From NCBI GenBank assembly GCA_038496445.1, contig JALMLS010000210.1, positions 106,448-170,447 of the forward strand: DNA of 64,000 nt, in the 5' to 3' direction. The DNA comes from Trichosphaerium sp. ATCC 40318 (Eukaryota > Protista > Tubulinea). A program made the position numbers and the translations under genes. This document shows positions 17,713 through 64,000 of this stretch, one piece after another; the first letter of the stretch is position 1, and the number at the start of each line of letters is the position of its first letter. The notes below the pieces were generated by a model, which worked only from the letters and a program-made list of their open reading frames with translations, made no database searches and was not told where the DNA came from.

Positions 17713-18124
17713 CAGTTTTTTTTACATTGAGAATATTCAGTTTTCTTTTTTTCTCTTGGTGTTATTTAATATTCACGTGTACGAATAAACATACTTATAA
17801 TTTCTATATATGAATTTAATCACTGAAGATATGTTAAGGTTAGAAGAGCGTAAAGGTACTAGCAGTTGAAAAATTTGAATTCAAATTGAATTTTTGTACT
17901 AAAAAACCGTTTTCAAATTTTTGACATTTGAAGTTGTCTCAAGCAATGCTGGCTTTACGAAAATTAATACTATTCTTTTCATCGCATGTACTTATAGTCA
18001 GTAGTTTGTGTATATATTATTTTGTACTTTCTAATATTACGTAAACAAAGCCTCTTTGCATCCGAAAATAGGCGAGTTTTCTCCAAAACACCGATAAATA
18101 TTCCCATTTCGGAACATTTTGACT

Positions 18125-21100
18125 ATGCGTACCACTTGTATTGCACTACTTTTAATTGCATTTTTTTGTGTCTGTAACGCACAATTATGTGGAAACCTAC
18201 GCATAACTCAATACTACGAAGGCCCAAGCAATGATAAATATATAGAACTATACAACGATAGCCCAACTTCTGCAATTCTTACAGGGCTTTCGATACGACT
18301 GTACGCCACCCTTGTTTATTTTAATTACTCTTAATTTCTTCTCTTTAATGCCAATTAACTTATTATTGCATGTAGATACTCTAATGCGAACAGACAGGCG
18401 CGTCTTGCTCAAATTCTTTTGCAACTTGAACAAAAAAAAAAAAAAAAAAAAGACTTTCAAAGTAGCGTCATGTATTGTTAACACGGTTTGTTTAGATCTG
18501 GAAGACTGCACCAATACCTAGTCCATCAGTACAGACGAATTTGGGCGGTTCAGTAGGAGGACAACGTACACATTTAAAAAAGATTGTTTTATTAATATCT
18601 AACGCGTAATAGTGGCTTATCTTATAGCTCATCCCTTAGCTGCTAACCCAGCATATGTTGTAGCTGATCAATTGCGGAATATAGCTTTTAATGGTGAGTT
18701 TGGGTTTTTTTCATGAATACCTTTATTATTTTCTTACTTTGTACTACTATTTAAGGTGACGACTCTGTTATTCTCTATGATGAAGTAAACGACGTCATTT
18801 GTGATGCTATTTCAATTACTTTTTCTCCGGGTTACAGAGATACATCGTTTAGTCTTGATTCACTTGATGTCACGAATGGTGTTAATATTGATGACTTTGG
18901 AACTGGTTGGACAGAGGCAAGTGTAACAGAAGTCGCCAATGCGGATGTATTTGATAACATACGCCTCGGTACGATATGATATTCGCTGTAGTTAGTTTTC
19001 TAATACCATGTTAGGTGTTTACAATCCACCTCCACCACCAACAACAGCTGCACCAACTACTGAAGCGCCAACTACTGAAGCGCCAACGACAGAGGCTCCA
19101 ACTACCGAAGCCCCTACTACTGAAGCTCCAACTACAGATGCTCCAACAACTGAGGCACCTACAACTGGTACTTGATAGATATTTTTACCTTTTTCCTCCT
19201 AACTGTGATAGATGCACCAACTACAGAAGCACCTACTACAGATGCGCCTACGACGGAGGCTCCAACCACAGATGCGCCTACAACCGAAGCTCCAACGACA
19301 GAAGCACCGACTACAGAGGCTCCTACCACTGAAGCTCCGACAACTACAGCTCCAACTACAGAGGCTCCTACAACTGATGCGCCAACAACAGAAGCCCCAA
19401 CGACTGATGCTCCAACAACAGAAGCACCAACTACTGAGGCACCAACAACTGAAGCTCCAACTACAGAGGCACCAACTACTGCTGCACCAACAACTGGTAC
19501 TTGATCGATATAATTTTTACCTTTCTCCTCCTAACAGTGATAGATGCACCAACTACAGAAGTACCTACAACAGAGGCTCCTACAACTGATGCGCCAACAA
19601 CGGAGGCTCCTACCACTGTAGCGCCTACTACAGAGGCTCCTACAACTGCTGCACCAACTACAGAGGCTCCTACCACTGAAGCTCCTACAACTGATGCTCC
19701 AACTACAGAAGCACCAACAACTGAACCTCCAACGACTGAAGCACCAACTACTAATACTCCAATTACTGATGCTCCTACAACTGAAACACCTACTACCGAG
19801 GCTCCAACAACAGCAGCTCCAACTACGGAGACGCCAACCACAGAAGCGCCAACTACGGAGGCTCCAACAACTGTAGCTCCAACCACAGATGCACCTACAA
19901 CTGAAGCACCAACAACCGTAGCACCAACTACAGATGCTCCAACCACCGAATCGCCTACTACAGCAGCGCCAACAACTGAAGTACCAACGACAGAGGCTCC
20001 AACAACAGAAGCACCAACTACTGAGGCACCAACTACTGAGGCACCAACAACTGAAGCTCCAACTACGGATGCTCCAACTACTGAGCACCAACAACTGAAG
20101 CACCAACTACTGAGGCACCAACACTGAAGCTCCAACTACGGATGCTCCTACAACTGAAGCACCAACTACTGCTGCACCAACAACTAATGCACCTACAACT
20201 GATGCTCCTACAACAGAGGCTCCTACCACTGAAGCTCCGACAACTACAGCTCCAACTACAGAGGCTCCTACAACTGATGCGCCAACAACGGAGGCTCCTA
20301 CCACTGTAGCGCCAACGACTGAAGCACCAACAACTGAAGCACCAACAACTGGTACTTTGTATTTTACTTTCTAAAGCAACTAACTTTCTTTGTGGATGCA
20401 CCAACTACAGATGCTCCCACAACTGAAGCGCCTACCACAGAATCACCAACAACTACAGCACCAACAACTGAAGCTCCAACTACATTGGCGCCTACCACTG
20501 ATGCTCCAACTACTGAGGCACCAACAACCGTAGCACCAACTACAGATGTTCCAACCACCGAAACGCCTACTACAGCAGCTCCAACAACAGAATCCCCAAC
20601 AACTGTTGCACCAACAACCGAAGCACCAACTACTGAAGCCCCTACTACAGAGTCGCCTACAACTGTTGCACCAACAACAGAGTCACCAACTACAGCTACT
20701 CCTACAACAGAGGCACCAACAACTGAAGCGCCTACCACTGCAACCCCTACAACTGTAGCTCCTACAACTGACGCGCCAACAACTGAAGCTCCAACTACAG
20801 AGGTTCCAACTACTGAAGCACCAACCACGGAAGCTCCAACTACAGAGGTTCCAACTACTGAAGCACCAACCACGGAGCACCAACAACTGAAGTGCCAACA
20901 ACAGCAGCTCCAACTACGGAGACGCCAACCACAGAAGCGCCAACTACAGAGGCTCCAACAACTGTAGCTCCAACCACAGATGCACCTACTACTGAAGCAC
21001 CAACAACCGTAGCACCAACTACAGATGCTCCAACCACCGAATCGCCAACTACTGAGGCTCCAACAACTGAAGCACCTACAACTGTAGCGCCTACCACTGA

Positions 21101-22105
21101 AGCTCCAACTACTGAAGCACCTACAACTGTAGCGCCAACGACTGGTACTTTGTATTTTACTTTCTAAAGCAACTAACTTTCTTTGTAGATGCACCAACTA
21201 CAGAGGCCCCAACAACTGTTGCACCAACAACCGAAGCACCTACTACAGAATCCCCTACTACAGAATCGCCTACAACTGATGCGCCAACAACAGAGGCTCC
21301 TACCACTGAAGCTCCTACAACTGTAGCGCCTACTACTGAAGCACCAACTACTGAGGCACCAACAACTGAAGCACCTACAACTGTAGCGCCTACCACTGAA
21401 GCCCCTACTACTGAGGCACCTACCACTGAAGCTCCTACAACTGTAGCACCTACTACATTAGCGCCTACTACGGAGGTTCCCACGACTGAGGCACCAACTA
21501 CAGGAGCTCCTACGACTGAGGCGCCTACCACTGTAGCGCCTACTACAGATGCACCTACAACTGAAGCACCAACAACCGTAGCACCAACTACAGAAGCGCC
21601 AACGACTGAAGCACCAACTACTGAGGCACCAACTACTGAGGCACCAACTACTGAGGCACCAACAACTGGTACTTGATCGATATAATTTTTACCTTTTTCC
21701 TAACTGTGATAGATGCACCAACTACAGATGTTCCCACAACTGATGCACCAACGACTGATGCTCCAACGACTGATGCTCCAACAACAGAAGCACCAACAAC
21801 TGAGGCTCCAACAACTGATGCGCCAACAACAGAAGCTCCAAACTCTGAGGAGCCTTCTACAGTAGCTCCAACGCTTTTCCCAAGTACTCCACCTCCTATG
21901 ACAGAGACACCAACGACTGCAGTACCTACTGAACCACCACAAATGTTTGTGCCAAATGCTCCAATTGCCACCACTACAACAAGCTCAGCAAAGGTACGTA
22001 GTTCAATGAACAGTCTACAATCATCTTTATTTCTTACACTGCTTAATTTAGAAACTGGTTTTCACTTTCTTGCTTGCACTTGTATTTGTGGCTATGATTT
22101 TGTAA
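18125..22105 (+). CDS. secreted, probably GPI-anchored mucin: lamin-tail-domain-like head + ~170 PTT(E/D/V)A repeats
   Basis: Signal peptide; LRITQYYEGPSNDKYIELYN...FNGDDSVIL (LTD-like); 15-bp repeat stalk; C-terminal SSAKKLVFTFLLALVFVAMIL; as assembled it has three 1-bp deletions and one TGG acceptor. Confidence 0.8.
19036..21840 (+). repeat. 15-bp coding minisatellite (consensus CCAACAACTGAAGCA) split by five duplicated introns
   Basis: Periodicity is directly visible; introns at 19168-19211, 19497-19543, 20352-20395, 21145-21188, 21669-21712. Confidence 0.95.
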
Positions 22106-38052: not shown

Positions 38053-41000
38053 ATGGCAAATCTTTACGCTCAGATAGCTCTATGCGTACTATGTGCCATT
38101 GTATTACCTAAAATACACGCCAAAATTCACTATATGCTTCCTGACGCCACTGGTGATGGCTCTGACATTACGTCAGCTACGTACGCTGTTTGTGTTTTGG
38201 GGTGTTTTTTTTTTAGTAATCGCTCATTTTGGCGTAGAGCAGCACCTTCTATGGCTTCCCTCGTGGGTAAAGTAGGTCCTGGCGACACTATTTACGTACA
38301 AGGCGGACTGTACCAACTACCGTTCGAAGGCGACCTCCTAATGTTTCAAGGCACCGAAGCAGAACCAATTACGATAACTAACTATCAAAGTGCGTGCTTT
38401 TAAGTTTTTTCAACAATTCGGGTGTTTGCATTTTAGCCGTTTATGCACTGAAGCTTTTGTATTTGACTATTCAACGCGCACCGGTGGTTAATTGCTCTTT
38501 TTTTTTTGGTAGAACCATAATAGACTCCAGCCGTTAATTGTCCATTAGATGAAGTGCCAACGTTCGAAATGCGAGCAGAACCAAGCGATGATATCGGTAA
38601 TAGTGCTTTATGGCAAAGTGAACGTTATTGGGTGTATTCGCCTCTAGGATTCTACAACCTTCGCTATGTTCATTTTTCGAATCTCCATGTTCGATACGCA
38701 GTGTGTACGTGCACACCTTTTTTGGCACTACAAGAATTATTGATTTTTTTTATTTTAGCACGTTGTTTCGGTTGTGATGCATGTGAGCATGTCTCTTTGA
38801 AGAATATGACACTTCATGGGTGTGGTAGACTTGGTATCATAATTGCTGGAGGGAACAATATAAATATTGAGGATACAACTATTGTTGGTGCTTCGCTGAA
38901 AGGTACAAAGAGTGTTCAGTAATTTTTGGATTGTTTTTGGAAACTGTGTTTTCTAGAATCGATATGCTTGTTGCTTTATTCGTTGACATTGTTTTAGAAT
39001 ACAACCCTTATTTTGATCTACCAATGGGTGCGCGTCTTATAAAACAACATATTTGGTTTTGCATTACTTGTTTTAACACAAGTTGTTTAATAGTTTTTTT
39101 GATAATTTTCGTAGGTATTTCATTTTTTGACAATGTTGATAGTATTACAGTCAGAAACACTCATATCACTCATTGCTTGGCCGCTATTTTATTTAGAAGT
39201 AATGCTTCGAATGTGGTACGTCTATAAAGATTTCAACCAAGCACGTGGAAATTTATCAAACAAGGCTTTTTCGAAAAAAACCAAACCACGAGGCTATCGA
39301 TTCTTCCCTTTAAAATAAACTTACTTATTTATTAATACTAGCATATTTCCAAAATATACTCTGAGTCAAATGCACAAGATGAATGGCATGGTATAGTACT
39401 AAGTGCTAATCCAGGAAAAATATTCTCGAACATAACTATCACCAGGTAAGTCATTTATTTATTGTTCTTTTTTTTTTTTGCTTCAAGACCTCCTCTTTGC
39501 TATTTAGAACGTATTATTATCTTACTATCATTCCATAGGTCCCATTTCAAGCTATTTAACAACCCTGGGTCTGAGTTCCTTAACATATTTGATGAGGAAG
39601 TACAACCTATAAATTTTACAATATCGAATTCTCTTATTATTGATGCACCAGCTTTCTCAAAACGTGCAGCACAATATAACATTGATTCTGTTTTCAATGT
39701 AGTCAAAGTCACAGAAGACTATTCGCCATCAAATGAAACTTGTTGTATATTCACAAACAACATATTTGTGGGGTGCGTCAATCACAAACTGAAACGTGCT
39801 TTTTTTTTATGTTTTTAAAGAAACTTCGTCTCAGTATTGCTTGCAAATTCATACATGTATTAACTCACTTGATAGACCTGTAGACTTTTCTAGTATGGAT
39901 ACAGTTCCTGATAGATTTTCTTATAACAATTTCCATTCTACTACATTCGAAAACAACGCAAATGTTTCAAATGGAAATATTTTTTATGATTCATTGTTTG
40001 CTGGAATCATTGAACGAGACTCTCCTGTCACAATAGCAGAATTAAATCCTTCGTCTCCTCTTCTAAACCAAGGAACATTAGTTTCTGAGTTGTACGACTA
40101 TAACTTAGTAGAGCGTAATAATACTCCTACCATTGGTAAGTTCTTCTTTTTTTATGTTTTGTTGTTGTTTTTAAAGAACCTGTAGGGATGTTCGAGCTTC
40201 CATTTGTGCCTAATCCAGCACCTGAAACAGAACCTCCAACACCTGAAACAGAGCCACCAACACCTTTATCAGAACCTCCAACACCTGAAACAGAACCACC
40301 AATACCGGAATTGGAATCTCCAACTCCTGAATCTGCATGTACGGGAGAAATAGTTGGCGCAGTGTGCCGTAATGGCACATGGATTATTAATGGTAACTTT
40401 AACCCTAACACTGGACAGAACATAAAGTTGAACTTACAGGACAGTGTTATTACTGTTACAGGTACCTCATCCAGTTAAAAAAAAACATCCGTTAAAAATT
40501 ATATCGGTTTTGTTCACTTATATTTTCTTCTTCAGGCAATGTGACGTTCATCAATGAAACTATTTTAGTCAATCCTTCAACTAAAATTGTTGTGTTAAAT
40601 GGTTGTGTTAATTTAGGTGGTACGAGTTTTTTTTTGCTGTAAAACACGTGACTTTCAAGGTGTTTTTGGGATTGTTTTGACTCCATTTAGGTATTTTACG
40701 TGTAAACACAACCACGCTTAACACGAATAAGATCACTCTTTTTGAAGTTCCTGATGGCTGTAATCCACAAATAGATAATGTAGAAATAGAATCTACTGAC
40801 CCATGTATCACTGGAGAAGCTAAACAAGAAGGTACTCCAAAAATTTTTTTCCTTTGTTCAAAGAATTAACATTTTTCTTTCAAAAGCGTCATCTATAGTG
40901 TTGTTGTTTGCAACATCTCAAGGAGATTGTAGTGAAGGTAGTAGTAATGTAGTATACTACATAAGTGGAGGAGTTTGTGGCGTTCTTTTGTTGGTTGTTG

Positions 41001-47950: not shown

Positions 47951-49556
47951 CTATTTTTGAATTCGTACAGGTTTGGTTTCGTCTAGCTCGTCATCATGAA
48001 ACGTGTCTTCGTATTCATTGGGTTCTAAACGAAATAAGATTAATGTAAATTATAGAGTTTGAAGCGGTACCTTGTTGCATTTGGGAAGAGTGGAAATACG
48101 CTACGACTAAGAGAATGTTAAAAAAAAAAATTTGTTGTTGTTTTCGTACCTTTTTTAAGCGAAGCTATCCTCTTTAATATAGCCGAGATGCTATCTCTAG
48201 CAACTCCAAGGTTACTTAATTCATTTTCTGTTAACCTCATAAAAGCTTCTCCTCTATGTAAATTATAAAAGGCTTGAAAAAGTTTATACTGAAAAAAAAT
48301 TTCTATTACGTAATCTTAGCATCCTTCAACTGAACAGGTAAACTCAAATCAAGTTTACCAAGTTCGATCAATACTTCACTTTCAGTCCATTTATCAGGAT
48401 CAATATCTGGGTTATAACCAGTGCGTTTCAAAGCCATATTCATTGTAACCTCAAACTTATCAACATATGTCACAAGACAGTAACGTGAAACCCAATAAGC
48501 ATCACAAGCTGAAGAACCAGAAGGATATTTTAATTTGCCACGTCCTTGAGGATCATTGTTAATCCAAGCGCCATAGAATCCAACTCCATTTGAGAAAGTA
48601 AAAACACCGTTTCCGTTCCTCTTTCCTTCTTTGTATTGACCTGTAAAAGTACATCCTGAAGGGATGATACTAGGACTATTAGCAACTTGTTCCTCTTGCT
48701 CAACACAAGGCCAAGTAACAGGGTCACGCCCATTAATAATAGATCGCGTATGAAACGGAATTCTCTTCGGTTTTGCGTGTGTTCCCATGCCGTTCATTTT
48801 CCCGTTTTTAAAGTTACCAAAATAACTTGAACCATCAGGCCACTTATAAGTACCTATGCCATTAATCTCATCTGATTCATACTCGCCCACGTGATTAGAA
48901 CCATCAGGCCAAGTAAATTCTCCGTGGCCGTGTTTTTTGTCGTTTTTATAGCCACCTACATAACACGTCCCATCAGCCCACGTGTATGTCCCTATACCAT
49001 TCATTTTATCATTCTCATAGTCTCCAGTGTACACTGACCCATCTGTCCATGTACAAGTACCTTTACCGTGCATCTTATCTTGTCGATAATCACCAACATA
49101 TCGAGACCCATCAGGCTCAGTATACACTCCTTTACCATGTCTTTTGCCATCCTTATACTCACCAACATAAGTAGTGCCGCTTGGCCACGTATAAGTTCCA
49201 TTACCGTTCATTTCATCGTTTTTATACTCACCAACATAACTTGCGCCTGATGGCCACGTGTAAGTGCCTTTACCATGTTTTTTGCTGTTTCGATAGTCTC
49301 CTTCGTATGATTTTCCTGATGGCCATGAAAACAGGCCTTTACCGTGAATTACGCCGTTTCTATACGTCCCTGTATACTTACGACCATCTGGCCACGTGCG
49401 AACGCCATTGCCATTTTGTTTACCTTTTTCGAAGTTTCCAATGAAAACAGATCCATCAGGGTACTCAATCGTTCCCTTACCATGCATTTTACCCTCTTTC
49501 ATTTCTCCTTTGTAGACATTATCACAACTTTTTTGCTCACCGGTTAGATCATTCAT
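47951..49556 (-). CDS. classical MORN-repeat protein with a C-terminal SAM-like domain
   Basis: ~12 repeats of YxGxYK.G.xHGKGTYTWPxG; DKWTESEVLIEL...ITGEAFMRLTENELSNLGV (SAM-like) across introns. Confidence 0.85.
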
Positions 49557-50409
49557 AATTATAGCCAAGGCGTAGATAAATTATTTTTTATCGTGATGGG
49601 AACAGTGTATGAAGATATTGTTAAGGTGTTGTCGATAAGATGATTGATCTTTTTACTGAGTTTTTTTTAGAACATTTTTTTTATTTGTTTGTAATTCTTA
49701 GTTTTACGTATTAATGTCACGTGCACCTTACTAATTAGCGGTAAATACCCACTGAGCGATAACCAACCAATGGAATGTGATAGAAGCTTTTTTTCCGGAA
49801 CTTCTCTTTCCAATTACTGTCGAGTACAGGATAGTACCATTGTGATGATCATTGTAGGGAAACTGTTGGCTCTGCAAAGGCTTGATGCGATATCCGTTGT
49901 GTGCCAGGAGAGGGTTTGTTCGTCTTGGTTTCCTACAAGCTACTGCGTATTGTATGTCAGTGTGCCTATTTTTACTCCATTAATCTATGCACTGAAAGCA
50001 TCATTGGAACTCATTTATTTTAACGTTCTTCCAATACGAATATGCGGCAATTCATATTCACGACAAAAAAACCTTGTATTTATTCAAATGCATTCATATT
50101 ATTCAAGGCGATAGCGTGTCAGATCTTGGAGTTTGCAACAGTGAAGTTGTAAAGAAATTGTTTGGTGTTTTCTTCGCCATCACCTGCTTTTCAAGAGTTC
50201 TAAACTCTCTAAATGGCTGTAACATTTGATTTTGAATCGATTGATGGGTTGAAAGCCAACAATCAAGCGTGTTTAGCACAATTAAAAAAAATGGCACAAG
50301 GCACAAGTCCTGCCATATTTGACCAACATTTTGAGAGAAAATTTCACCTAAGAGCGTTTTTTGTGTCATTATTCTGCTCCGCCAAAGAAGTTTCGGTCGC
50401 TAAAAAAAA

Positions 50410-53732: not shown

Positions 53733-55456
53733 TTACATTAAACTGCTTCGTTGAATAGGTAGGTGTCTAGCTTTTGACGGATTAGTCTTGCTCTGCTCTT
53801 CTTCACTATTATCCCATAGATTATAAACAATATCTCTATCTGAATCATCTCCTGTGTTGCCATACCAAGCTTGTAAATGGCTGTAATCTGAATAGTCTGT
53901 TCCATTTGTATAATTCAGTCTTTACCAAAAACAAGTCATTATCTCGCTCCTGCTTTAATAAATTATTGCTGCGTACCTCACTTTGACATGTAGTAATATT
54001 ATTATAGCTACTAGAATCCACTCCATTATCTTAATAGCCTTTGAGAATATTAGAAAGGCTCGAAAGAAAAAAATAAGAAGCATAATTATATTAATTAAAC
54101 ACGTGCGTATATTGTAGCTAGTCGAATTCTCTCATATTTTAGACTCTGATCCATAGATTCAGGATGGAATAACCACACAAAGTATAGACAAGCCATGATA
54201 GAGAAAATAATAGTGGCAGACAGCATGAACACCCAAACCTTTTACAAATCCAAGGTAAGGTATTAAAACTTTCGATTTCACTAAAAAACTGTTGTACCTT
54301 TACTACCACGCCACGTAGCTTTCTTTTTGAAACAAAGTTTCGTCTCGAGTATCGAAGAATAGTTATTGATACTACCAACGTTGCTACGATACAAAATACA
54401 AGTAGTAAAACGCCTAAAACTTGTCAGAAAAAAAGCTAAAAAAGAATGAAAAAAGAAAAGTCCTGCAATGCGGAAGCATATCAATGCAACTGAGCAATGT
54501 CTAAGGAGAATTTATTTGCGGTGTGGATTGATGCTACATAGCAGGTACCTGTAATATAGAATGCCCGTTGTAAAAGAATAAGTCTATCACTTTTTGTCAT
54601 TATTATCCCAACTCTAAAGCCTATGATGACTGTGAAGATTGCGGGTATAGATAATATACAGCCATAAGCAATAACTTTAAAATACGCTTTGCGAAAGGTA
54701 AGCTTTCCGACTATCAAGGCATAGCGACCAAGAGTCAAAATCCACACAGAATACCTATCAACAAAAAAAAAACATGAGAATAATTTTCTTATAAGTTACC
54801 GTACAATGAAGCCATTGCCATAGCAGAAAGTATAGAATCTGTAATGAAATCGAACCTACCTAATTGACTCAAAGGATCCACTGAAAACCACAAGACATTA
54901 ACTAAATAACCAAAGCAATCAGAACACCAAAAAAAGAACACTGCGCTGAAAAAAAAAACACGTACAGATACAACAAACGAATATCATTGTAAATTCACAT
55001 GCCATCAATGCTTTAAGAATACCCTTCAATATTATAAATACTTTAAATCTCTTCTTGAACAACAATACAGCCAACGTCACTACAAAAGTTATACGGAACT
55101 CAAACAAGGCCTTCCCAAAAAACTACTGTCACTTCACAGCAACAAGTAATTCTTCGCACGGTGTACTTACAAAATATTAACAAGATATAAGATACGCTCC
55201 CAAGTATCCTAAACGCAAGCCATGTCAAAGGGTGCGCCGTATTAACGTTTTTGTCGCAAAAAGATCCTAATTAACAAATTTAGCGTTCTGAACTGCTTTT
55301 TTCTTTATCACGTGATGTTTTTAACGTAGCACGTGGTAAATTTTATCAATTACCGTAGTATAGCATATTACAATAGCAAGAACCATCTGATAGTGTTATA
55401 CCGTTTGGTGCGCACACGTAGGTAGTGTTCAACACGCTAGAATTCGATGCGGCCAT
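53733..55456 (-). CDS. EGF-like N-terminus + multi-pass (7TM-like, THH1/TOM1/TOM3-type) membrane protein
   Basis: CAPNG...GSCYCNMLYYGSFCD, then several hydrophobic helices including WFSVDP. Confidence 0.65.
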
Positions 55457-56119
55457 CTTGGCATCATTTGCTGAAACAAAATTAACTTGGGACTGAGAAG
55501 TCAAGCTTATTATACCGAGGTTACGCAGCGTGGGCGCTAGAAGCCTAAAATGAATAATACAACGTCGTCTTTTCTGGTTTGCCGGTAGTGTACGCGTAGA
55601 GATAATCTATCTACTTGTTGGGTTGTCATATAAATTGTCGCTGTTTTTTGACAAAACGTTGCGCTGTGGTAGCGCTATTAGACAACGCGTATGTACTCGA
55701 TGAGATAGAATACTTGTTTACTTTTTTTTTTTCAAACATCTCAATACTCGAAAACAGGTATTTGCAGTATGTCGACTTCCACTTAAATGCTTCTGGTTTG
55801 CGGCAAAGGCCGAAAGCAGAGCAAGTTTCCTGTACAAATCTACCCAGAATACAAGTATCATACAAGTTATATTGGCAGTCTCGAAGCAGTTAAGATCTAC
55901 TGTTTGATCTATTGCTTGTATCCAATGAAAAAAATACAAAATCTCCATCCCAAACAACTGAGTTGTTTGTGAGTAACTCAGCAAACAAAACTAGAAGGTA
56001 ACCTTTACTGACAAATATATAAGACTTTATAGTCGTGCATACTAACTGTGGGCGCTTGGTACTATGTAAGTGGCTCAGTCTTTCTCGCACAGGAATGTGG
56101 CTATCGTAGAATTTCTCTT

Positions 56120-56400
56120 CATTCCATGTATTTTCCTTTTAGGGTACCACTAGCATAAGTACATTGTATAGCCAATATGCCATTTCATACCACATCTTGG
56201 ACTCTGTAATTGACCAAGTAACTTGTTTTCAATCATAATTACAGAGCGTTTTGGCATGAAAATGGTAAGTGATGATTCGATCTAACTACATCAATGGCAA
56301 AAGGAAGGAGAGGACTTGGTTTAAAAATAGAGTACCACAGCTTGTAGTCCCCTTCCCATTCGCCATCAACGTAAGTAGTTTGTTTCCATAATTCACTGTT
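56120..56400 (-). pseudogene. decayed MORN-variant repeat relic
   Basis: Minus-strand fragments ELWKQTTYVDGEWEGDYKLWY and ESKMWYE/NGILAIQCTYASGTLKGKY with stops and frameshifts. Confidence 0.65.
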
Positions 56401-56749
56401 AGTCTGTTACGTTATATATAAAATAGTTTCTGAAAATGATGTTAAACCTAAACAAGAAAACAACAATGAGCTGTACACAGTAAAAAAAACAGGAGATTTT
56501 ACGCGACTCTACAACCTGTATCAATCGTGTCAGCTACCGTTGCACATGACCCAGATAAAAAGTCAGGTATAACATCTGTCTCACGACCGGCAGCAAGGAA
56601 TAGAACACCACCAACAATTTCTCCTGTTAAACAATATTCATTTTCATGGTCCTGTCACGTGTACCATATTCTGAGAGTTGTTGAATTTAGACGTCACTAT
56701 GACAACGAGAATGACACTTTGAACAACTGATTTTTACTGTTTCTCTCTA

Positions 56750-57880
56750 TCTTACGGTGAGGCTTCAACCGATCAAATCGTACAAATAATGCTATCTACA
56801 CCTCCAAAGGCGGTAAATTGAAAAATCTGATTTCAGTACCAAACCACTCAGAATTAGTAGTTCAATATCAATGCCGTTAAGTTTCGTGACGAAAATCTAC
56901 TCAAAATCTTGTAGAACCAATACGAAGGATGCCGTTTGGCCGCACTAGCGCTCCCGCTACAAGTTCGGTAGCAATACGCTACACCATCTTGGCCATGTAG
57001 AATCGACAGGGCACATAGCGCCTGATCTAGCAAAGATCAGTGCTATTTCTAACATCTCGACTACCAAATACTTTTCAGACTCATGTGCATGCCTATGAAA
57101 AACTGGTTACTACAGACGATTTATAAAGGGCACGCTAAGATACTATGGCAGCACCTCTCACCAGTATGCTTAAGAAAGACAAGTAATTGAACTGGTCCAA
57201 CCCTCATGATGATGGTGCATTCGACTCACTTACAACAGCATTGGTTTCCCAATACTTGCACCTGCACAGATTTACTCTTTTCACAGATACATCAGACGTT
57301 GGCATTGGTGTACTCACACAGATCAATAGATGGTGATGAAAAGGTAATTGTGTACCGCAGTGGAGTATTCCAACCAGCAGAAAAGAATTACTCTGTCACA
57401 GAACGTGAATGTTTAGCCATTGCAGACGGTTCAAAAAGTTTAGATGTCACTGATGGGTACTTTACCGTTATGTAACAATGCGTTTCTTACAAAGTTTTAA
57501 ATAAAAGATAATCACAGTGAAAAGGCTTGAGGTTTGTTAGCGTCGTAAAGGCTTGCTGTCGCTGCGCCTAATTTTTTTCTTTTCGAACCGCTGTGCTTGG
57601 CAGCAAATGTCAGTACTGCAGTGTAGTTGAGAAGCAAGTGATTTGGCGAGATGTCGCTCAGAAATCATCAGAAAAGCGTACAGTGATAGAGCGAAACAAG
57701 TACGAAACGGTTTTTCAAAATAAAGTTGTAGAAAAACCCTTATGGTAAAACCTATTTTCTTTGCAGTTTGCAGTAATGTAGAACGTGTTTTCGCGGACTA
57801 TTTTTTAACCCGATAGGGAACACAAAGTATTATCATAACGAGAACTGGTAACGAATTCGTCGACCAGTTTTTGCGCCAGG
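56750..57880 (+). mobile_element. degenerate Ty3/Gypsy LTR-retrotransposon pol fragment (end of RT, RNase H, trace of integrase)
   Basis: LGHV...PDLAKISAI, GYYRRFIKG, AAPLTSMLKKD, TDTSDVGIG, AEKNYSVTERECLAI; multiple stops and frameshifts; no LTR identified. Confidence 0.85.
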
Positions 57881-60800
57881 CAGACGCTGTAGTCACTTGG
57901 GGTTTTTTTGTGTGATGTTGAGATAGATTTTTTTCTCTTGCGTCTGTTGTTATTTTCTATCCCACTGGTTTCGTTTGTAACACTTTAGATTGGTAGGCTA
58001 TTTAAATTACACTGTTTTTGCGCTAAACAGAACCAACAACACTGCGGGGCATGAAAACGGCACCAAAGAACTCTTTACGCACCACAATGCGCTACTCTAC
58101 TCTCCAAAGAACATGTACTACAACAGTTTTTTCTGCTATTTTGTCTATCTACGACAACATGCAGTCTGTACATTGCCCTACCACGGCGGATACCCGATAT
58201 ATTGTGTTACTAGTATTGAGCACTAACAACCATCAGTATTTTGCAACAACTTTTTTTTTGACATGACGTGCGCCTATGATCTTTGTAGCAACCATGAACG
58301 CTTCCACCCATTTGTTGTCTAAACCTTAATGATGTAGTATCCGCTGGTTGGCGATGACATGTTCATAGCAATCCGTGTCATTCAGGTTTGAATAGTTGTG
58401 ATCTAGTTTATATGCTCTCCTCCGTGTACAGCTTTACTTTGGTTGCTTGTTTCATTCAATATGAGGCTCCTTTAGAAGTCAAAAATTTGTTCATCTTCTA
58501 TTTTTTTTTTTTTTTTTCAGGAATAAAAACGTTTTCTTGTTCAATGAAAACCAAGCGGCGAAAATATTTTTATTGCAGTTTTATACGCACATATACATGT
58601 CGCATTAGTGTGCAAAGAATCAGGTCAAAAATCGATTTTTCAAGCCAGATATTATGACTTCTTTCTGGTTTTTTTGAGCCAAAAACGAGGAATGTTTACA
58701 AATCTTTTTCTCGTTGAAAATACAAAACGTGTGTATTGACATGTAGATCTGTTGTGAAAAAAATCAGAACTGAACTTGAATGTGTTTGCCATAAATGGTA
58801 CCTTTCTTATTTTTTTCTGTATTTTCACTGTGAAAATTGTTGTGTCACTGGCAGGATGTTATGGATTTATTTGAGCACACTGACCATTCAAAGATACCGA
58901 CGGTAATAATAGTATTTACATGCTGATGTCTCAACCTTTTAGTCGTTATGGTGACCGTTGCAGGTCCATCGCTGCAGTAATTTATGCAGTTACAATATGT
59001 TCCTTTGAACTTTGTTCATGTTTGCATAGCTCTTCTCTAGTTTTATCAACCTTATTATTTGCTTCTTGTAACTCTAGTTCAATTCCATGTTACACTAACA
59101 CTCTTGTCTAGTCACCAGGGATATTTATTGTCCATGAAATCCTTACAGTAATGTGAGGTTGGTTTTTTTTAATTGTCAGTTTGTTGGATGCTGGTTACCT
59201 TTTGGCCAGGGATATACTGTGCAGTACACTACAAAATACACAGTGTGCTCTCATACCTACTTCTTACACTTAGAGAAGTATAAACCATGATTGTTCATAT
59301 GATATTTAGGAAAGAATGAAAAAACACTCATCTTGAGTCTTGTCACTCCTGGCAATACCACAGGTTTGGTTAATGTAAGTGGTCCCAACAACTCAAGTAT
59401 AGACATTTAGCAGGAGTTTACAATAGTATAAAAAATATGCAGTACTGGATGTATATCCTGTAAGTACACAAACAAGTCTTTACTTTGAACTAGCTACTAA
59501 TTATGAAAGGCACAAGCACCGACAAGTTAAGAGGACAGCCAATAAAACCAGCCTACTACCAAGTTCATTACAAATTGATAGCTAGGGAAAGACCTCTTGA
59601 AGACATATGGTTGGTAAGCGATGTCAAAAACCAATTTATGATATTTCTGTTTGGGATTTCAAAGTATAGAGCTCTATGCGTTGGTAGCTTCACTTGTATT
59701 TCTATACAGAAAAATATTTGAAAAAGTCAACAATTAATGGATGCAATTTTTATTGGCTACCTTGTTTCTGTCTTTGTGTCAATAAAGGTATCCTTCACCT
59801 CCTATACTATACTATTCTTTATGTATAGAATGAACAAATTAGGTACATATTATAACTGGAACTATACCAGACGCTATTCAGGGAGTTGTATTCTCCCTTG
59901 TTTCTACAAGGAATAAATGGCAAAAAAGATTGCAAAAGTTTCTCCAAAAGTAATAGTTTGGTGTCAGTGGTAGATGTTACTCTATGTTCCTTAGTTATAA
60001 ACAGAATAGCTTATCTATGCGTGCTGTTAAAAGAACTAGTGCTATTTCTTGTTCTCATTTTAGAGACCAAAATGAGTAGTCTCAGAACATTAAATTATTT
60101 CACCTGCAACTTACTTTTTGATCGAGATTTATTATATATCTCGCTTGTATGTAATAAATTCTCTAGCAATAATATTCTTCCACTCGCATGATCTATGATG
60201 GAAATAGGGAAGAACCATCTTTTGTCCTAAAATGCGGAGTAAGTGTGGTGACTTCACAAAGACGCTTCAAAATCTTTAATAAAAAACTGCGATTTCGCTT
60301 ACATTGCAAGACTTCACTTTTGGCTCCCTTTTTCTGTGTTTCGTTTGTGAGTTACAGCACTGCTAACACCTGAGGTAGCGAAAGGTCTGTATTTGTTGAT
60401 GTACAAAGTCATTTTTTCTCATGTATAAACCAAACCTATTCCTTTCAATGATGTGTATTTTTAGGCGTCACGTTACACTTGATGTTATGTTAAGCCAAAA
60501 TTGCGTAAAATTTGACACATGTCAAAATGTCTACATTTTAGTCGATGCCTTTTTGCGGGTATGTACATTAGGATGTGAATACCTAGTGTGCTAGGCGGTT
60601 TTTTTCAATCCAATTGGAGAGCTGCAGTACCGATAGCACTAATTAGGAATAAAACTACGACTAAAGTCTGATTTCAAAGAACACTGAGCGAATGTGACAA
60701 ATGTTAGATTTGATTTCTCTTGTTACTTTTCTAACCATGTAACCAAGTTAGCGCGCAATCGACTACAATTCAGAGGAATAAACGTAGTGTTAAAAGTCCA

Positions 60801-61449
60801 CAGACTTTCTAAAAACAAATAGCCTAGGACAAGAACAGACGCACACAAAAACTGTTGATCGCTGGGCACAAGAAGTCTAGCTAGTCGTTGTGTACTAACA
60901 GCGAACTTTTTAAAAGCTATAACATCCAAAGTATGGGACGATGCAACTAACGCAATATGTACATAACCAGTATAGTGCAATGCAGGAGCGACCAAAGTTA
61001 ATTTACTTGTACACGCACGGAATGTGTGTATTCTCAGCTAGAGTACTTGTGCTTAGCAACCCTTATCGTCTTGGCGTGGCGAGTTACGCTTTGGCTGATA
61101 GCTACTACGATATTTCACACGGCGTAGAAAGATGAATTTACTGAGCAAAGACCTAGTACTAGTAACATGAAAAGCAACTAATTTTTATTGAGAAAGAATT
61201 CAAAAAACTACCGTTAAAGAAAAAGCATGACTTTGCTTCTTGTGGAGGAAAGAACTACGCTGCAACAACATGGAGTATTGGCTGAACTCTGTTTAGCCTT
61301 TATTGTAGAGGTATCCCATTCGTAGGTGATAAGGGTTTACTGTTACCTCGTGCAGCTCCGTTGTGGTTTATTCTTTTCCCCATCATACTGCCAAAGCACC
61401 ACTACTGTCACCTACAATATTAATATAAGTTAAATAGATAACTGGTATC

Positions 61450-62997
61450 ATTTCTAACCAGAAAGAAAAATTACTTGGTTGCACATGCTATGCGACCGTG
61501 AAGTAAAAAAGTGTTCAATTGTATTGAATTAGAGGTGTTCGTGGTCCAGTCCCGGCAAAGCCAACGGCTAAGAAACTCTTCACAAAATCTGTAATCGGCT
61601 AAACCATTTAAAAATGTGAGATTTTGTTGGTGTTACAAATTTTTTAAGTCCTGCATGCTCCTAATGGCTTTGAAATTCGTTTTGTTCGATGCATAGGTCC
61701 AAATAATATCAAGCAAAAAAATACAAACATGGTTTGAGTTTTACGGGGGCAGGTCCTCTAATTTTATTAGTTAGGTCATGCAGTACCTCTAATTTTATTT
61801 TCTGATTGTATACAGCGTACTTTTCACAGTCACGTGTTTTAGAAAATTACCATTCTGTTAACAGTAATTTAAACGTAAACAGCCATAGATCCTAATCAGT
61901 GAACACTAGTTGGCCTAATTACTGTTACGATAATGTCTCAACAGTAGGCCCTCTAATTTATGTTAAGCGCACTCAACTGTTCATAATCAACAACAACTAC
62001 AGAACTAACAACAACGCTTACTATGGAACCTATGGAACCCAAAGAACTGGAAGAGCCAAAGAGTATTTTTACACACTCTTTCCGAACATTAAGCGAATGC
62101 CTAACATTTATTACTATGATGGTACACGCACAACGCTCAGAAAAGTCATGAAGGAAAGAAAACTTGTGTTCAAGAGACCGAACTACCCAGAAGCAGAGTA
62201 CCACCGTGTTTTAGCCAATGATTTGCGCATTGTGCCTTTGGACATTGCCAAGTTGAAGTTGGGGTTATTGATGAAAAACTCCAAAAGAACAGGTACCTTT
62301 TTTCTTTTGATCATGTGGTTTTTTTTCAGAATAGGCCCTCTATTTTTTTACTTGTGTTGACTTTATTAATAGACAATGGATGCTTGGTGCTCACTGCCAA
62401 TGCCAAACTAGATAAGAAAGGATATCCCAGAGCTTGTATTGGAGGTGTGTACTTTAAACTCCACCACTTGGCTAGATATTGTCATTCAGGTATTACCATT
62501 TATACTGAAGTACCTGGTGTTGATGGAGATGATAAATATGTAGTTTGGACAGGCTACAACCGTTGTAAAATAGATGGAAGCCATTTATGTCATAACAAGG
62601 AGTGCTTTGATGCTGCTCATGTGGTATTTGAACCATCTGTTGTTAACCAAAGAAGAAATACCTGTGTTGCACAAGGCTATTGCTCTGGCCATGTGTACAA
62701 TGGAATTGTAGCACCAGATTGCATTCTTTAAATGCCAAAACATTGTTTTTCAATAAACATAGTCTCAATTTGCAACAGTAGTACCTCTAATTTAGTTAAG
62801 GGCAGTCCCAAAAGCTAAAAGGCACCCTGTTGGAAAGATATTAGTAAGACTTGTTAAGTTTTCCACCAAATTGTCCTTTACCTTGTTTATAATATTTCCT
62901 TCAACAAGATTTGCAACGCCATGAGTATCACCAGTAATCTCACCAAGTTTTCCAGACGTTGACTCAGCATGTGCAACCAAATTTTCTGGTTAGAAAT
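61450..62997. mobile_element. candidate ~1.55-kb element bounded by inverted repeats and carrying a His-Cys-box nuclease
   Basis: ATTTCTAACCAGAAA (61450-61464) and TTGGTTGCACATGCT (61475-61489) are exact reverse complements of 62983-62997 and 62966-62980; no clear TSD. Confidence 0.45.
61933..62731 (+). CDS. His-Me finger / His-Cys box endonuclease (I-PpoI-like, zf-His_Me_endon)
   Basis: GT-AG intron ~62293-62372 joins ...NSKRT/DNGCLV; GYPR, HHLA, GSHLCHNKECFDAAHVVFEPSVVNQRRNTC...CSGH...PDC; AATAAA at ~62752; start is either 62097 or 61933 (via intron 61944-62002). Confidence 0.88.
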
Positions 62998-64000
62998 AGC
63001 ACAATTCTCAGTCTCCAAATTCACGCTAAATACTAAGAAACGCTCTGAACAGATACATGTAAGCAAGAGGATAGACAAAGAACATTTAGCGTACAGAAAC
63101 TTGGTGCCAATCAATAAGTAATGTTTGTGCAAGTTTTGTAAAATTCAAGGCAACTTTGCACTTTCTACACTTTCAATTATTGTAGGATATAATTGGCCGG
63201 CCTTATTTATTCTACCAGTCTTAACCACTTACAAACAATAAAGCATTTAGAGTAATTCGAGATGTACAGACATCTTGGCACGTGACTTGCAATCCCGTTT
63301 GATTTTAAGTTGTTTATTTGTTTTTTCTGTTATTGTATATGGATGGTGATAATCCGAAGAGATCCGAAGAGATGATGCAATATAAGAATAAAAAGAGAAA
63401 TAAAATTTCGTATTGTAAGTCGCTTGTAACAATAACTTCAATAGTCATTGCTACGCAGGACAAAAGCAGAGTTATTGTGTGAAATGAGGAAAATAACAAC
63501 GTAAAGAATCTCATGTCTTTCAATTAAGCATAGTTTCAAATGCATCCTTTATTTTCTTGCTATTTCTACACCTTTCCTAGTTGGCAATAGGTTGGCAGTA
63601 AAACAACATTTAAGCACCACATGGCAAAGAAACAATCACTTATTTCTAGTGCTATTAATCACTCGGTCTTAAAGTTGTGTCGACAAACAAAGACTGGACT
63701 GAGTCGTTCCTGAAAAAGACCGCGAAAGCTATTTGTATCAATTCCAAGTACGGACATCATTGAAATAAGATGTGAGCTCAAATTAACTTTATCATACGTA
63801 ACACAAGACGTACTATCCTTGAGCATGGGTTATTGATAAAGTAGCTTCTTAATCAATTACTATGAGTCTAGTGTTATGACTGAGCACTGGTCAGTGACAA
63901 CTGGTATATCTTTCAAAGTTGATTAAGTATTAACTGTCAGGGTACGGACCAAAGCCATTGACTGAAGCAGAGTGTTGCAAGAAAGGAATCTTATTTTCAG

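Follow-up and report, generated by a model that had tools for sequence, protein, structure and literature searches.

A free-standing, intron-containing His-Cys-box nuclease gene in an inverted-repeat-bounded unit of Trichosphaerium: a candidate selfish cassette

In the literature searched, His-Cys-box nucleases are known from only two settings, the group I introns of protist and fungal ribosomal DNA (rDNA) and the animal transposon KolobokP (PMC3943268, PMC5714182, PMC9587614). What, then, is a nuclease of this kind doing outside both of them? The question is raised by a stretch of 64,000 nucleotides (nt) from the amoeba-like protist Trichosphaerium sp. ATCC 40318 (contig JALMLS010000210.1, positions 106,448 to 170,447, forward strand). 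This whole stretch is called the window here, and all positions refer to it. The unit at 61450-62997 (1,548 bp) is bounded by inverted repeats and holds a single gene, which encodes a His-Cys-box nuclease. A first-pass annotation, made from the sequence alone, had proposed it as a candidate new mobile element. The locus is read here, with middling confidence, as one copy of an undescribed family of free-standing His-Cys-box nucleases that contain a spliceosomal intron and form selfish cassettes in this protist. We infer that the cassette is mobile.

The nuclease gene and its expression

The nuclease gene is composed of two open reading frames (ORFs) of the + strand, 61899-62360 and 62315-62731, and removal of an 80-nt phase-1 GT..AG intron (62293-62372) joins them. 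Exon 2 carries the codons of the catalytic His (62582-62584) and the metal-binding Asn (62645-62647) and ends in the stop codon TAA at 62729-62731. Parts of the stretch are held by five public runs from two studies (2015 and 2023), and four of these runs were compared over positions 60000-64000. Their contigs cover only the genic parts of this region and leave the inverted-repeat arms uncovered. Contigs of two runs from one sample (X1 and X3) omit exactly 62293-62372, with GT..AG ends (joint 62290>62371, cut +2), and this bears out the splicing that the first-pass annotation had predicted. The 5' ends of the contigs lie at ~61937-61985. Contigs of two runs terminate at 62770, which is 13 nt past AATAAA (62752-62757), the poly(A) signal noted earlier behind the ORF. 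Because the coverage is gene-only and the introns of both the nuclease gene and its neighbor are skipped, the runs were taken as transcriptome assemblies. The nuclease gene is transcribed, spliced, and polyadenylated. The neighboring gene (63564-64000, - strand) is also expressed, and a contig skips its 70-nt intron at 63880-63949. It is convergent with the nuclease gene and extends past the end of the window.

A further run, X4, belongs to the second study and holds near-identical pieces of both exons. The same run contains a ~90% identical paralogue piece over 62398-62511, which has 11 differences and continues at both ends into unlike sequence. Between the window and the near-identical expressed copy there are five substitutions, of which four are synonymous third-position changes (62189, 62437, 62488, and 62563), while the remaining one, at 62569, exchanges Lys for Asn. 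This pattern suggests purifying selection on the nuclease gene, the numbers being small.

The two copies also differ near the 5' end of the gene. In the window copy, ATG 62023 is out of frame because of 1-nt homopolymer differences at 62066 and 62079, and the first in-frame ATG is 62097. The expressed copy has one T fewer in a T5 run (62066) and one fewer in a T3 run (62079), and with both deletions ATG 62023 opens the full reading frame. Further differences are 1 nt at 62012 and the insertion of CGC after 62116 in the expressed copy. It can be supposed from the two extra T residues and these further differences that the window copy is an early pseudogene of such a cassette and that an intact sister copy or allele is the source of the transcripts. 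This is quite improbable, given that both frame shifts fall in T runs, where assembly errors are common, that the in-frame ATG 62097 remains, and that the nuclease exon is intact with mostly synonymous differences. An early pseudogene would be compatible with every other explanation discussed below and does not exclude any of them.

The protein was analyzed by searching exons 1 and 2 separately, with window:62375-62728:+ as the exon 2 query. Exon 2 matches the Pfam family PF05551 (zf-His_Me_endon, the zinc-binding loop region of homing endonucleases) with an E-value (E) of 1.4e-10 and 41.9 bits, and the curated cut-off of this family is 27 bits. In contrast, exon 1 has no Pfam match, and similarity to it was detected in 0 of 151 relatives. 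A phmmer search of the PDB with exon 2 gave I-PpoI as the only meaningful solved relative (E 0.01, 19 bits, identity ~20%), aligned over I-PpoI residues 95-128. In this alignment, H70, C72, C77, H82, N91, and C97 of exon 2 correspond to H98 (the catalytic His), C100, C105, H110, N119 (the metal-binding Asn), and C125 of I-PpoI, respectively. C103, H106, and C116 fall at the place of the second zinc cluster of I-PpoI, and the counterpart of its first zinc ligand (C41) is probably C3 or C21. The profile match, which the first-pass annotation had named as a check, and the I-PpoI alignment uphold its description of a spliced ORF with an intact catalytic His, metal-binding Asn, and both zinc clusters.

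When 1.84 billion representatives were searched exhaustively with HMMER, 223 relatives came out at E<=1e-3, with a top identity of 42%. The nearest relatives are uncharacterised eukaryotic or metagenomic PF05551 proteins (P0001, P0002, P0012, P0008, P0076, and others; 33-42% identity, E 9e-15 to 1e-8), and none of these has a name or a described function on record. All 60 relatives that were aligned match PF05551. H70, C72, C77, H82, E86, N91, and R94 are invariant among them, and S69, H73, C97, C103, and C116 are near-invariant; the window gene retains all seven columns of the first group and all five of the second. A word search with exon 2 in a collection of 5.8 billion proteins gave no matches, and its length window probably shuts out full-length kin. 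Two of the relatives, P0004 and P0141, have unusual architectures. One carries three tandem PF05551 domains in 498 amino acids (aa), and the other, of 857 aa, combines two PF05551 stretches with a C2H2 zinc-finger array behind them.

An AlphaFold2 model of exon 2, built on the alignment of the 60 relatives, reached a predicted local distance difference test score (pLDDT) of 92 and a predicted template-modelling (TM) score of 0.82. When this model was compared with known structures, I-PpoI was the top match in Foldseek (probability 0.96, with a TM score of just 0.39) and in VIA-align (Z 6.5, root-mean-square deviation 3.1 A, 90 of 118 residues). The VIA-align runners-up were I-HmuI (Z 5.7) and, behind it, the DNA-binding domains of Smad and NFI. 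The model supports rather than proves an I-PpoI-like fold of exon 2, the Z score being middling. In sequence, active site, and fold, the window gene agrees with the His-Cys box homing endonucleases (PF05551; His-Me finger group 12, PMC5714182).

Repeats in and around the gene

The most informative feature of the locus, which was absent from the first-pass annotation, is a motif of 16-30 nt whose copies are unique to the unit. Five copies are present in the 64 kb, all on the + strand and all within 61450-62997. The motif core, CCTCTAATTT, occurs four times in the 64 kb vs 0.25 expected. As a 16-mer with <=2 mismatches, the motif occurs five times vs 0.12 expected, and the fifth occurrence lies in the 80-nt intron. 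The chance expectation of a motif copy within the intron is ~1e-4 by an arithmetic estimate. Two of the other copies lie in a 36-nt direct repeat (61939-61974 vs 62773-62807, 86% identity, E 2e-4), and the transcription unit fills the space between its two members almost exactly. The positions of all copies are given in Table 1. The motif was also considered as a general signal of the genome, and this was rejected, as it has no occurrence elsewhere in the 64 kb. A metagenome scan with the motif pattern returned 120 single, apparently chance matches, none of them with a related gene or with similarity to the unit.

Table 1. Features of the unit and of the nuclease gene, in window positions
Feature	Position	Strand	Basis or remarks
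Left inverted-repeat arm	61450..61499	+	Exact blocks 61450-61464 and 61475-61489; weaker pairing up to 61499
Non-coding upstream part of the unit	61500..61748	+	Pieces 61582-61634, 61611-61727, and 61656-61703 match other contigs
Motif copies 1 and 2, tandem (GCAGGTCCTCTAATTT.., GCAGTACCTCTAATTT..)	61749..61810	+	Starts 61749 and 61780, spacing 31 nt
Motif copy 3 (61944) in the left 36-nt direct repeat	61939..61974	+	Directly before or at the transcript 5' end
Two-exon nuclease gene	62023/62097-62731	+	Sequence and ORF list
Exon 1: 5' untranslated region (UTR) and N-terminal coding part	61975..62292	+	Sequence, ORFs, contigs; resembles no relative
Spliceosomal intron, GT..AG, 80 nt, phase 1, with the fourth motif copy	62293..62372	+	Splice joint in contigs
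Motif copy 4, degenerate	62331-62346	+	In the intron
Exon 2 coding part, complete His-Cys box / His-Me finger nuclease domain	62373..62731	+	PF05551, alignments, model
3' UTR with AATAAA (62752-62757)	62732..62770	+	Contigs of two runs stop at 62770
Motif copy 5 (62778, 8 nt past the transcript end) in the right direct repeat	62773..62807	+	Repeat begins 3 nt past the transcript end
Right inverted-repeat arm	62956..62997	-	Exact blocks 62966-62980 and 62983-62997

The second kind of repeat is the inverted repeat at the ends of the unit. The two exact 15-bp blocks reported in the first-pass annotation hold up: 61450-61464 pairs with 62983-62997, and 61475-61489 pairs with 62966-62980. The core arms measure 40 nt on the left and 32 nt on the right with an 8-nt indel between them, and weaker pairing extends out to ~50 nt. 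The best local inverted alignment scores 48, which exceeds the maximum of 41 reached in 300 composition-preserving shuffles (26.1±2.9), and the maximum over 24 other 2.5-kb pieces of the window is 34. The outer edge of the inverted repeat is sharp, with the flanks ..GGTATC and AGCACA.. and the termini AT..AT. The ends of the unit show no TTAA, no TA, and no 5'-RR..YY-3', and to our knowledge they agree with no known superfamily signature. The arms recur nowhere else within the 64-kb window when <=3 mismatches are allowed, and no second copy of the unit or of either exon turned up in blastn and tblastn searches of the window. Pieces of 40-80 nt from 61289-61975 are shared with several distinct contigs, which continue past these pieces in unlike sequence. 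Therefore, at least the upstream part of the unit probably recurs elsewhere, as judged from these shared pieces.

The inverted repeat invites the explanation that the nuclease gene is a passenger in a non-autonomous DNA transposon with terminal inverted repeats (TIRs). According to this explanation, 61450-62997 is moved in trans by a transposase whose gene lies elsewhere, the nuclease is uninvolved, and the motifs are regulatory elements of the gene. A significant inverted repeat with a sharp outer edge and a unit of 1.5 kb without a transposase would fit such a passenger, as would the links of relatives to Mutator transposases (described below) and, in animals, to Kolobok (PMC9587614). The passenger explanation is nevertheless unlikely. 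Target-site duplication (TSD) of any length is absent at 61449/62998, though the arms still pair perfectly over their outer 15 nt. The termini described above and the lack of a further arm copy in the window also speak against it, and it leaves unexplained why three distant relatives share the layout of motifs upstream, in the intron, and at the 3' end.

Distant relatives and genomic surroundings

The layout in these relatives was studied in the contigs of eleven relatives, where repeats common to the region before the nuclease exon and the 3' end of the gene were scored against shuffles. Three of the eleven loci (L002, L012, and L017), which come from other organisms and encode proteins of 33-42% identity, repeat the layout of the window, each with its own motif. 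L002 (36% identity) carries TTCACTGAAT three times vs 0.03 expected, and of these sites one precedes the ATG by 170 nt, one is in the intron, and one follows the poly(A) signal by 29 nt. In L012, a perfect 23-mer (23/23 nt) is found 30 nt before the exon-2 acceptor and a second time across the stop codon. A 26/32-nt repeat of L017 lies inside the 53-nt intron and likewise returns across the stop codon. The window gene and all three relatives have the intron in phase 1, and between one and six codons separate it from the domain's first Cys downstream. The shared phase and like position in four genes indicate an old intron, whereas each gene has a motif of its own. A motif that is gene-specific in sequence and shared in position would be expected if it were tied to the specificity of each nuclease, as its site or a non-cleaved version of it. 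The motif of the window (T) is likely the cognate site of the nuclease, a candidacy suggested by sequence and position. An inverted repeat in L002 (3066/4400) is weak (74%), lies within apparent coding stretches of the opposite strand, and was taken as chance. Therefore, the inverted repeat is not regarded as a shared feature of the family.

An exon trap was considered as well, in which exon 2 would be a mobile cassette that bears an acceptor and is spliced to host exons. The lack of detectable similarity between exon 1 and any relative would agree with this. However, a motif copy also precedes exon 1 in the window and in L002, and the whole gene lies between the best-matching pair of repeats, so the exon trap, though conceivable, was not adopted.

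Transposons appear beside some of the relatives. P0038 is a single product of 368 aa, in which a Mutator transposase domain is followed by a PF05551 nuclease domain. In the metagenome contig L018 (232-2549), the PF05551 gene P0094 is convergent with, and slightly overlaps, the gene of a 646-aa Mutator-like transposase. From this fusion and this convergent pair, it can be concluded that the nuclease family associates with transposons besides Kolobok, and L018 and P0038 look like a Mutator counterpart of the KolobokP pairing. As a separate observation, in L013:1-4492 a gene recorded with DUF5906 lies ~4 kb from the nuclease relative P0029. This domain is characteristic of the D5-type primase-helicases found in large DNA viruses. 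The contigs of L013, L001, and L017 all belong to assembly GCA_049309705.1.

The surroundings of the unit in the window were scanned for known carriers. Rfam searches found no family in the whole 64-kb window at gathering thresholds and none at E<=1 in 60500-64000, and no rRNA was seen. The window has no tRNA, the ORFs of 54000-63000 hold no transposase domain, and no LTR (long terminal repeat) pair was found. These Rfam and flanking-ORF domain scans agree with the earlier statement that rDNA, a group I core, and a transposase are lacking here. The sole domain match in the flank is a decayed, isolated RT_RNaseH fragment at 57191-57472 (+, E 9e-10), 4 kb to the left, and the earlier description of a decayed neighborhood is fair in light of it. 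Insertion of the unit into an LTR retrotransposon was rejected, as there is a single decayed RNase H fragment 4 kb off and no LTR pair. Farther from the unit, the region 18000-22000 has a G+C content of 0.43-0.50, a GC skew of -0.21 to -0.36, and an AT skew of 0.33, and the short CAACAA-type matches at 19547 and 20438 point to either a simple repeat rich in C and A or a low-complexity coding stretch. Overlapping ORFs on both strands at 40127-40478, with PTPETEPP and GGSVSGVGG repeats, mark a simple-repeat region. An ORF of 420 aa at 48306-49568 (-) consists of a repeated Y.G....G...G.G pattern and is MORN-like by eye.

These data also bear on the explanation that the gene is a stationary host gene, domesticated or defensive, whose product (a sequence-specific nuclease or DNA-binding protein) regulates itself via operators that are copies of its site, the inverted repeat being unrelated debris or a structural element. 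Expression and splicing in contigs from the studies of 2015 and 2023, mostly synonymous substitutions, and an old gene structure, as indicated by the conserved intron position and phase in distant relatives, all accord with a host gene. A motif at the promoter, in the intron, and at the 3' end would suit autoregulation, and no direct sign of movement was found. In contrast, a ~90% paralogue and indel-bearing near-copies are expressed, and pieces of the upstream region recur in other contigs. The setting is gene-poor and decayed, beside a retroelement fragment, and relatives are linked to transposases. Among the 1.84 billion representatives, no relative exceeds 42% identity, which is unusual for a conserved host gene. 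A host gene is, on these grounds, an improbable account of the locus.

Proposed mechanism and known systems

The preferred reading remains that of a selfish cassette of an undescribed nuclease family. Hints of a multi-copy selfish family are given by the expressed ~90% paralogue, the near-identical copy with indels, the recurring upstream pieces, and the Mutator transposase links of relatives. Several observations weigh against this reading. The runs are not recorded as RNA, and their RNA nature is deduced from the spliced joints and the gene-only coverage. No direct repeat of 2-10 nt that could be a TSD abuts 61450 or 62997, and a second copy, an empty site, or a solitary motif was not seen within the 64-kb window. 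Seven of the eleven relatives' loci show no significant bracketing repeat, some of them having short flanks or unclear gene models. The frame-shifting homopolymer differences near the 5' end may mean that the window copy is starting to decay or that the assembly is wrong. The motif is also without clear palindromic symmetry, and a homodimeric enzyme of the I-PpoI type is expected to prefer a palindromic site. The first-pass proposal of a mobile element thus received partial support: a free-standing I-PpoI-like nuclease within inverted repeats was found, whereas a TSD and a second copy in the window were not.

If the cassette is mobile, its spread might be pictured as follows. The enzyme would recognise T, and a solitary T elsewhere would be broken. 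The break would be repaired from a T-exon1-T-exon2-T copy, whose flanking T copies would offer homology on both sides, and the cassette would be copied in. The cassette would in this way home into a short site that is dispersed, a small-scale version of the KolobokP model of long terminal direct repeats (LTDR-INT-LTDR), in which the nuclease cuts in the repeat and induces copying or unequal crossover (PMC9587614). The T copies in and around the gene may instead, or in addition, be non-cleaved operators for self-repression. Operator self-repression is known from I-TevI. The outer inverted repeats may be part of a carrier repeat that gave the cassette its landing site or that a transposase mobilises in trans.

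More speculatively, the T-exon1-T-exon2-T signature may define an undescribed class of protist nuclear homing elements, each with its own 20-35-nt site upstream, in the conserved intron, and at the 3' end. Such elements would spread by cutting solitary sites and copying themselves in via the short repeats, and the site would co-evolve with the nuclease, as is suggested by the different motifs of the window, L002, L012, and L017. This generalization is doubtful at present. A nuclease-only protist unit that is transcribed by RNA polymerase II (pol II) and spliced would, if true, mean that the His-Cys-box family can be selfish with neither ribozyme nor transposase. Were the motif the target, every member of the family would be a natural nuclease supplied with its own 20-35-nt site, which is of interest for mobile-DNA biology and genome engineering. 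The motif copies offer a concrete and cheap test of the target hypothesis.

The literature searched holds no description of free-standing, spliceosomally spliced His-Cys-box members with their own short flanking repeats, and the locus can be compared with several known systems. The rDNA-intron homing endonuclease genes (HEGs), represented by I-PpoI, I-DirI, and those of Naegleria, share with the window gene PF05551, the catalytic His, the metal-binding Asn, and both zinc clusters, as well as a eukaryotic protist host. The I-DirI mRNA likewise carries a spliceosomal intron and is polyadenylated. Unlike these HEGs, the window gene has neither rDNA nor a group I ribozyme and forms its own pol II-type transcription unit. 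It lies between short direct repeats in an inverted-repeat unit and is not within an intron that restores a host gene.

Since 2022, a nuclease of the His-Cys-box type has been known as the second gene of the animal transposon KolobokP, beside a DDD/E transposase (PMC9587614). KolobokP resembles the window unit in that a transposon-like unit carries a His-Cys-box-like nuclease and direct repeats lie on both sides of an internal part. In contrast to KolobokP, the window unit has no transposase, no TTAA duplication, and no 5'-RR..YY-3' ends. Its direct repeats are ~30-36 nt long and without TIRs of their own, whereas those of KolobokP are LTDRs with TIRs. In addition, the window intron carries a copy of the repeat, and the host is a protist and not an animal. 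The window unit thus departs from KolobokP in every structural feature that defines it, and from the known His-Cys box homing endonucleases in lying outside an rDNA intron. Compared with a non-autonomous TIR DNA transposon of the miniature inverted-repeat (MITE-like) type, it has the terminal inverted repeats but lacks the target-site duplication.

Free-standing HEGs of other nuclease families include the Mob and Seg genes of phage T4 and mitochondrial ORFs of the GIY-YIG or LAGLIDADG type that duplicate the invaded gene's end. The likeness here is that of a nuclease-only selfish gene without an intron or intein as carrier. A further likeness is given by the flanking partial duplicates of the invaded sequence, and in L017 and L012 the repeat supplies the stop codon. 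The window gene differs from the phage and organelle genes in that it is nuclear, has a spliceosomal intron, belongs to another nuclease family, and has a short dispersed motif, not a conserved gene, as its presumed target. Like the window gene, the uncharacterised PF05551 relatives have a phase-1 intron ahead of the (G)C motif, and three of their loci also have its layout of repeats, while the sequences of their motifs differ from that of the window.

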